Both the position numbers and the translations under genes were made by a program. Under the pieces are notes generated by a model, which was not told where the DNA came from, did no database searches, and saw only the letters and a program-made list of their open reading frames with translations. DNA of 61,963 nt, filler included, from Hausera hauseri (Eukaryota): assembly GCA_046269625.1 (NCBI GenBank). It is 11 parts of 11 records of this genome, joined end to end, with 100 filler letters (N's around TTAATTAATTAA, not from the genome) between each part and the next. Parts side by side here need not be neighbours in the genome. Positions count along the whole stretch, not along the records: positions 14,732 to 21,599 come from JBJURY010056551.1; 10 more parts are not named here. One strand, given 5' to 3'. Below, one piece after another: positions 21,030-21,544 of this stretch. Position 1 is the stretch's first letter, and each line of letters opens with the position of its first letter.

Positions 21030-21544
21030 AAAATGTACATCCACCCTCTTCTAAAAAAAATATAAATAGGCCTATATGTATATATTATTTTGGGGAAAAT
21101 GTATATGTTTCTTATCATTTTAAAAACTGATAAGAAGATAGGTGTACATTACTACCAATATTTTTTTTTCGTATTATTATTATTTTGTTTTACGTGCAAT
21201 ATTGATTGGAAAAAAAATATATATATGTCCAAAATATTATCAATTAAACAATAAACATTGTTCGTCTCAGATTAATATCTAACTAAAAGATGTACATTAT
21301 TAACATACACAAAATTTTTTTTACCCATCTGAAAATGTATATATGTAATATTGATTTAGATATAAATACATATGTATGTCTAAATTTATAATCCAATAAA
21401 CAATATTAAATGCTCTCATCAGCTTAATGTCTGACAAGAGGCTCAATGTACATTATGACCATGTAAACTTTGTACCTACTACTCTTTCAAATGTATATAT
21501 ATATATATTCAATGTTGATAAAACTGTAAATATGTAAAAACTGA

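Follow-up and report, generated by a model that had tools for sequence, protein, structure and literature searches.

How did a retrotransposon that sits in a U2 snRNA gene come to carry three degenerate pieces of U2 in its own 3' UTR, and do these pieces do anything for it? The question is raised by a locus in 61,963 nt of Hausera hauseri DNA (GCA_046269625.1), a stretch of 11 parts joined end to end that is referred to below as the window. A first-pass annotation of the window had described three decayed U2 copies in the 3' UTR of the element, and had proposed a capture origin and several possible functions for them.

The part of the window at 14732–21599 (JBJURY010056551.1) opens with an intact U2 snRNA gene, and a second U2 gene starts 724 bp on, at 15487. 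U2 numbering throughout is that of the window's own intact gene at 14763–14955.

14763–14955, + strand: intact U2 snRNA gene (Rfam RF00004, 191.1 bits, model positions 1–192).
15487–15532, + strand: second U2 gene, 5' part only (nt 1–46), interrupted by the element (partial Rfam U2 match, 53.9 bits).

The second gene is interrupted after U2 nt 46, following ...GTATCTGTTC (15532/15533), and its nt 1–46 directly abut the 5' UTR of the element, which lies in the sense orientation relative to the U2 genes. The U2 genes at 14732–15486 are arrayed in tandem at a period of 724 bp, and the 31 nt upstream are identical in both genes. An AATAAA located 6 nt past the U2 3' end (14961) could polyadenylate read-through transcripts.

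The foreign sequence in the U2 gene is a complete APE+RT non-LTR retrotransposon with both ORFs open. Its parts outside the 3' UTR, including the sequence that follows its tail, are listed here.

15533–16545, + strand: 5' UTR, about 1 kb, G+C-rich, with direct repeats.
16546–17595, + strand: ORF1, 349 aa, with a CCHC zinc knuckle (PF00098, E 2.2e-05).
17672–21001, + strand: ORF2, 1109 aa, uninterrupted, with apurinic-type endonuclease, reverse transcriptase and zf-RVT domains (Pfam).
21547–21579, + strand: poly(A) tail of 33 A.
21580–21599, + strand: 20 nt after the tail, not U2; the part ends there.

Pfam analysis of ORF2 gave matches to PF03372 (E 5.5e-16, residues 7–211), PF00078 (E 8.8e-38, residues 504–750) and PF13966 (E 3.1e-06), and the protein is full length, its homologues spanning 1057–1145 aa. 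Because both ORFs are open and ORF2 has the length of its homologues, this copy of the element is young or active. The direct repeats of the 5' UTR (15612–15885 and 16217–16245) include a 90-nt family in three copies and a 29-nt core, AGTACCACAGC.CCGGACCTG, in four copies, and are similar to the monomer repeats found in certain LINE promoters.

At the other end, the last 10 nt of 21580–21599 (TTCCTTTTGA) are the same as those at the 5' junction (15530–15539), and this 10-mer is present at just two places in the window (0.04 expected). The repeat may be either the head of a second, head-to-tail tandem copy or a 10-bp target-site duplication in a variant U2. The 3' junction of this copy consists of the tail and 20 non-U2 nt, at which the part ends, and is not comparable with poly(A)|U2 junctions.

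The 3' UTR is 545 nt long with 78% A+T, and is filled by a repeat of about 150 nt. Three units (A, B and C) and a truncated fourth (D) are present, with the U2-like segments spaced 152–153 nt apart and in register.

21002–21170, + strand: unit A (repeat families D2, D4, D8 and D9, spacing 300–304; alignment A1).
21171–21322, + strand: unit B (repeat search and alignment).
21323–21478, + strand: unit C (repeat search and alignment).
21479–21546, + strand: truncated unit D, cut short by the tail, with no U2-like segment (repeats, alignment, shuffles).
21096–21132, + strand: U2-like segment A, about U2 nt 29–67, gapped (Smith-Waterman score 34).
21259–21282, + strand: U2-like segment B, U2 nt 42–65, 20/24 identical, hairpin lost (Smith-Waterman score 29).
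21411–21448, + strand: U2-like segment C, U2 nt 42–79, 31/38 identical, the best preserved (Smith-Waterman score 41).
21250–21255, + strand: internal AATAAA, 3 nt upstream of segment B.
21395–21400, + strand: internal AATAAA, 10 nt (A-rich) upstream of segment C.
21544–21549, + strand: functional AATAAA at the end of unit D, at a position homologous to that of the AATAAA in B and C.

The 3' UTR contains exactly three AATAAA hexamers, whose positions within units B, C and D are homologous; unit A has lost its own. In B and C the hexamer is followed within 3–10 nt by the U2-like segment, and in D by the real poly(A). From the hexamers at 21250 and 21395 the next AATAAA lies 145–149 nt downstream, the last one bearing the A33 tail. 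Segments B and C, together with their units, thus look like an element 3' end plus its former flank, since the segment follows AATAAA as the real tail does in D. The non-U2 parts of the units are also homologous, with 55–63% identity in global alignment and blocks of 71–80%. All three segments lose their resemblance to U2 at one common position, after which an identical TGTACATTA follows.

One public sequencing run carried the element sequence, as contigs only. These Logan contigs reproduced 18359–21168 with 2 base differences and 21194–21483 with 0, and similarity among the units is only about 60%, which makes an assembly artefact in the 3' UTR unlikely. No joint or variant within the 3' UTR was found among the contigs of this one run, a result that, coming from contigs only, is uninformative on the number of units.

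Could the U2 similarity be a chance match in an AT-rich, repetitive UTR? Scores were compared with those of dinucleotide-shuffled sequences. Segment C, ungapped at 31/38, scored 41 against 18.8 ± 2.4 (maximum 32) for the whole 3' UTR, with 0 of 2000 shuffles reaching this value, and against 16.4 ± 2.3 within its unit (0/1000). For segment B, whose core at 21259–21280 matches U2 nt 42–63 at 19 of 22 positions, the score of 29 compares with 16.2 ± 2.4 (maximum 28; 0/1000). Segment A, with two 1-nt gaps, scored 34 against 16.4 ± 2.4 (maximum 31; 0/1000). In ascending order of score, the three segments stand at z of about 5, 7 and 10. Unit D showed no U2-like segment, its score of 14 lying within the shuffled range (15.2 ± 2.3, with 772 of 1000 shuffles as high). 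The shuffled AT-rich control that the first-pass annotation had named as a test therefore favours the match, 0 of 1000–2000 shuffles reaching any of the three scores. Its account of the positions, sense orientation and register of the three copies with the ~150-bp repeat is likewise borne out, each copy beating 1000 dinucleotide shuffles. Its counts of 31/38 and 20/24 for segments C and B were reproduced; the gapped match of segment A was found as described, with slightly wider limits (21096–21132, nt 29–67, in place of 21101–21133).

The annotation had also looked to the Rfam U2 covariance model for confirmation, and here the outcome was negative: no match was obtained in 21002–21599 at E ≤ 10, even when these 598 nt were searched alone. 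The model is silent because the segments are too short and decayed (38 nt), which places such fragments below its reach, and its silence does not contradict the shuffle statistics. Together with the 78% A+T content of the UTR, this silence is what speaks for a chance match; against it stand the shuffle results and the occurrence of all three segments in register over the same U2 interval, and we regard chance as a practically negligible explanation. Matches to miRNA families of Rfam in the 3' UTR reflect only the hairpin of unit A and lie far below gathering scores.

In a MAFFT alignment, identity to U2 was 82% for segment C, 68% for B and 66% for A, compared with 100% for the flanking U2. U2 nt 1–39 are absent from the captured fragment, only about nt 40–79 being detectable, and similarity past nt 79 toward nt 99 was not significant in any unit (P 0.45–0.70). 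Covering U2 nt ~42–79 only, the segments have neither the branch-point-binding region nor the Sm site, and by the criteria of Rfam RF00004 they are not a U2 gene or pseudogene. Elsewhere in the element, U2-like stretches were limited to 9–10-nt matches at chance level. The spacer downstream of the U2 gene, where the AATAAA at 14961 is followed by TGTAC as in the units, was considered as a source for the remainder of the unit and rejected, the best Smith-Waterman match giving z 2.1 with 26 of 500 shuffles equal.

The point at which the segments begin was compared with the 3' junctions of related elements. Relatives of ORF2 were collected from metagenome contigs and from contigs of metagenome-assembled genomes that are labelled bacterial and clearly hold animal DNA. 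Twelve U2-inserted relatives have a complete 3' end abutting U2, in which AATAAA is followed by a few bases, an A run and then (AGT)ATCTGTTCTTATCAG, i.e. U2 nt 36–40. The segments in the window start at nt 40 ± 2, matching the place at which U2 picks up again behind the poly(A) in those 12 independent relatives. The claim that the segments start near the insertion site is thereby upheld. Keno and Utopia elements share one 3' junction, the disrupted U2 genes having no first 38 bp (PMC4640811), and the junctions of the 12 relatives agree with this published one.

This boundary bears on a source in RNA, in which the reverse transcriptase would have switched templates onto mature U2 snRNA, as happens in L1-snRNA chimeric retrocopies, and the fragment would not stem from the genomic flank. 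Template switching onto U1 or U2 RNA is documented for L1 and has been inferred for the Tx1-mobilised SINEU (PMC4494074). However, L1-snRNA chimeras carry the snRNA 5' end, and here nt 1–39 are missing; moreover, the fragment starts at the canonical junction, directly after the AATAAA and A-rich remnant of the element. An origin from mature U2 snRNA is accordingly judged highly improbable.

A U2-like stretch is missing from the 3' UTR of all 12 U2-inserted relatives (z −1.2 to +1.1), none of the three U1-inserted relatives has a U1-like stretch there, and no target-like stretch was found in any of the 66 fetched 3' tails, true flanks aside. The ORF2 comparators with DNA are only 24–29% identical to the ORF2 of the window and fall in a different part of the tree. 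Being so distant, their absence of segments says nothing about the element's own clade. This clade, represented by protein sequences, comprises the unnamed proteins P0001–P0032 (up to 57% identity to ORF2, with P0001–P0016 at 40–57% and the closest at 52–57%), next to fish and frog proteins, and is separate in the tree from the U2-flanked metagenome loci. The metagenome scan gave relatives of 24–31% identity only, alignment scans gave only distant relatives, and single-protein scans of genome and viral collections found nothing.

Several observations were made on the relatives themselves. Three loci (L085, with U1 at 3036–3199 and 9961–10137 and ORF2 at 4933–8421, L086 and L087) are APE+RT elements in U1 snRNA genes, 28–29% identical to the ORF2 of the window, in which AATAAA and A(n) are followed by U1 from about nt 36–40. 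The Tx1-type targets found in the literature searched were U2, U5, 5S, tRNA and satellite, U1 being represented only by the DNA transposon Dada-U1, and a U1-specific LINE may perhaps be undescribed. At L134 (6861–18565) a related element adjoins an array of at least 14 tRNA genes with a spacing of about 498 bp, which recalls the Dewa family and its targeting of tRNA arrays. Metagenome-assembled genomes labelled Arenicella sp., Anaerolineae, Sedimenticola sp., Metamycoplasmataceae and Taylorina symbiont (among L085–L136) carry animal LINEs and U1 or U2 genes, pointing to host contamination, and in several Arenicella contigs a single Tx1-like element recurs many times at intervals of a few kb. 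Three IMG/VR contigs of 186–211 kb that are filed as viral (L082–L084) contain a stretch 32–34% identical to the reverse transcriptase part of ORF2 (residues ~394–764).

We then considered how many captures the three segments record. The first-pass annotation had left the choice between repeated capture and one capture followed by duplication. Compared with U2, all three segments share the derived changes C68A and T70A, B and C share T66C and T77A, and A and B share G71A. These amount to 9 pairwise shared derived states compared with 2.4 expected at random (P 0.0005); allowing for A+T bias and the mutability of G/C sites, the expectation is 3.2–3.6 (P 0.004–0.008). This excess, together with the common stop point and the common continuation into TGTACATTA, favours one capture, and since the non-U2 parts of the units are homologous as well, whole units were duplicated, probably in the order ((B,C),A). 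The capture origin thus stands in its single-capture form, and repeated capture is disfavoured.

The case for three independent captures of read-through U2, one per unit, would be that each segment is closer to U2 than to the others, and that a cycle of read-through and template jump adds a unit at a time at the 3' end, where the 3'-most copy is indeed the best preserved. The closeness of each segment to U2 rather than to its sister segments is not evidence for separate captures, however, as independent decay from one U2-like ancestor predicts the same. Three captures also leave the excess of identical derived states and the shared 3' boundary and continuation to be accounted for, and the states shared by B and C already hint that the U2 parts coalesce with the flanking unit sequence. 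We consider three captures very unlikely.

The reading we favour, with a probability of roughly 0.65, is that the three segments are fossil 3' junctions, captured once by read-through, duplicated, and since decayed as passengers. What is observed is that the segments are homologous to U2, begin at the canonical junction and have an AATAAA beside them in B and C, that they are built into repeated units, and that they have derived changes in common. In this history, an ancestral APE-type element in a U2 gene would have been transcribed past its own AATAAA and a short A tail into U2, from about nt 40 to at least nt 79, and the read-through piece would have become part of the element by 3' transduction. 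Two properties of 3' transduction are found here: the captured sequence is the DNA 3' of the progenitor insertion (nt 40 ± 2), and it lies between the old and the new poly(A) signal and tail. Downstream of the captured flank, the final ~110 nt of the element's tail would then have been added afresh. The simplest single step would be an end-to-end jump of the reverse transcriptase from a short piece of element 3' RNA to the read-through RNA; alternatively, a deletion may have joined two insertions lying next to each other in the U2 array and so supplied the new tail. The resulting unit of about 150 nt (tail, AATAAA and U2 fragment) would subsequently have been duplicated inside the 3' UTR. The segments would now be passengers rather than required parts, giving at most occasional help through pairing with the nicked target or internal initiation.

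A role in the element's life cycle was assessed from structure and conservation. Segment A contains a perfect 9-bp inverted repeat, TTCTTATCA / TGATAAGAA, that is an extended version of U2 stem IIa, and the predicted fold of unit A (−19.3 kcal/mol) is significantly stable relative to shuffles (z −4.05), while those of B and C are not. In segment C, the TCAG/CTGA pairing of stem IIa noted in the annotation is present, although the hairpin is no more stable than in shuffles (z −0.18). The shared changes C68A and T70A lengthen stem IIa by up to four pairs, and the position pair 44/71 is U-A in segment A, C-G in segment C and U-G in U2. These stem-lengthening changes could trace selection for a hairpin; three copies are too few for a covariation test of it. 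Within 21090–21160, unit A forms a long imperfect hairpin with the 9-bp stem IIa-derived core and outer stems, the latter built on a self-complementary ATGTACAT-like motif that recurs at each unit start and right after each U2-like segment.

Identity between units was 64% (68/106) in the U2-like part compared with 58% (189/325) in the rest, with no real difference in conservation, and the segments have decayed at about the same rate as the remainder of the UTR. The functional roles suggested earlier, as a pairing aid, an ORF2-binding hairpin or a U2 mimic, are not supported by these data: there is no excess conservation, only unit A folds, and the 12 U2-targeting and three U1-targeting relatives do without segments. 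A U2 mimic appears unlikely, because the branch-point-binding region and the Sm site are missing.

An alternative is that the segments have been kept because they work in target-primed reverse transcription, by tethering the RNA or providing internal starts, and so stand in, from within the element, for the read-through target sequence required by R1Bm. The segments are sense copies of U2 just 3' of the bottom-strand nick, so that pairing with the primer strand is geometrically allowed, and both their orientation and their start at the junction nucleotide are right for it. Downstream target sequence is needed by R1Bm, and SART1Bm initiates internally at telomere-like motifs of its 3' UTR (PMC7265360); in fish R2, 28S-like 3' UTR sequence has been proposed to stabilise an intermediate (PMC5035012). 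The element is moreover intact and has three copies of the segment. On the other side, decay has affected the leading nucleotides, those that would lie beside the primer end when paired; A and B are just 66–68% identical to U2, with no extra conservation over the rest of the unit; the segments lie 100–450 nt upstream of the tail used by this copy; and they are absent from 15 other snRNA-targeting elements. On balance we find maintenance for reverse transcription unlikely. It is quite unlikely that the segments are maintained homology arms, that is, target copies in the element's own 3' UTR that pair its RNA with nicked U2 DNA or start reverse transcription internally, with target choice made partly by RNA-DNA pairing and the hairpin (C68A/T70A) perhaps binding protein too. 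A function of the segments is unlikely to be essential on present evidence. As the element is intact, it must have retrotransposed with this composite UTR, which is tolerated at the least.

The element appears Keno-like in where it inserts and in the domains it encodes. Keno elements are U2 snRNA gene-specific retrotransposons of the Tx1 clade (Kojima and Fujiwara 2004, as described in PMC4494074 and PMC4640811). In common with them, the element of the window is an APE+RT retrotransposon inserted in sense inside a U2 gene of an array, with two ORFs and, in ORF2, an apurinic endonuclease followed by the reverse transcriptase; the fossil junctions and those of the 12 relatives coincide with the published site. 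The literature searched, which did not include the original 2004 description, contained no account of U2-like segments in a Keno 3' UTR.

The closest parallel is the fish R2 lineage (R2Gs, R2Pt, R2Bs-A/B and R2Sb), in which the 3' UTR contains sequence derived from 28S rRNA, with a 15-bp case in R2Hm-B (Kojima et al. 2016, PMC5035012). In both systems the 3' UTR of a target-specific non-LTR element includes a diverged copy of its own target, which resembles that target less than the real flank does (66–82% compared with 100% in the window), and a role in RNA-target pairing has been suggested for the R2 copies, which by analogy might extend to the segments here. R2, however, has a restriction-like endonuclease, in contrast to the apurinic-type enzyme here. 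The R2 copy is single, is located at the 3' terminus and corresponds to a 28S region upstream of the canonical site, a region that insertion replaces; the copies in the window derive from U2 downstream of the 3' junction (nt 40–79), and are internal, preceded by a fossil poly(A) signal and triplicated in a tandem unit. An upstream-of-site origin of the R2 type is thus not seen in the window.

Read-through leading to 3' transduction is known for L1. The present case resembles it in that flanking DNA is carried because transcription passes the poly(A) signal, leaving the piece between an old and a new signal. It differs from the usual situation in that the cargo is the element's own target, is fixed in the lineage and has been amplified in an internal tandem repeat. 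Among target-specific elements, 3' transduction has been obtained in assays of R7Ag and R1Bm, as cited in PMC7265360, and for R1Bm the same source describes pairing of read-through target sequence with the primer strand. The telomere-repeat-like motifs in the SART1Bm 3' UTR (PMC7265360) are also short and target-like, with internal starts of reverse transcription by annealing to the nicked target, but are 3–4 nt long, whereas the segments in the window measure 24–38 nt and clearly descend from the target gene. Fossil U2 junctions are not a new mechanism, the R2 parallel being known. Their origin as a junction captured once and then duplicated is well supported.

Site-specific LINEs are studied as tools for targeted insertion, a central issue being how the RNA template is placed at the nicked target. 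Fish R2, and now a U2-targeting element of the APE type, carry target sequence in the 3' UTR naturally and offer existing test cases of whether RNA-target pairing helps. The anatomy of this 3' UTR records a capture, in the order of an old poly(A) signal, a tail remnant and flank from the junction nucleotide, followed by duplication. If the segments are neutral, the locus would clearly illustrate 3' transduction by a site-specific element, as well as the growth of a LINE 3' UTR by tandem duplication.
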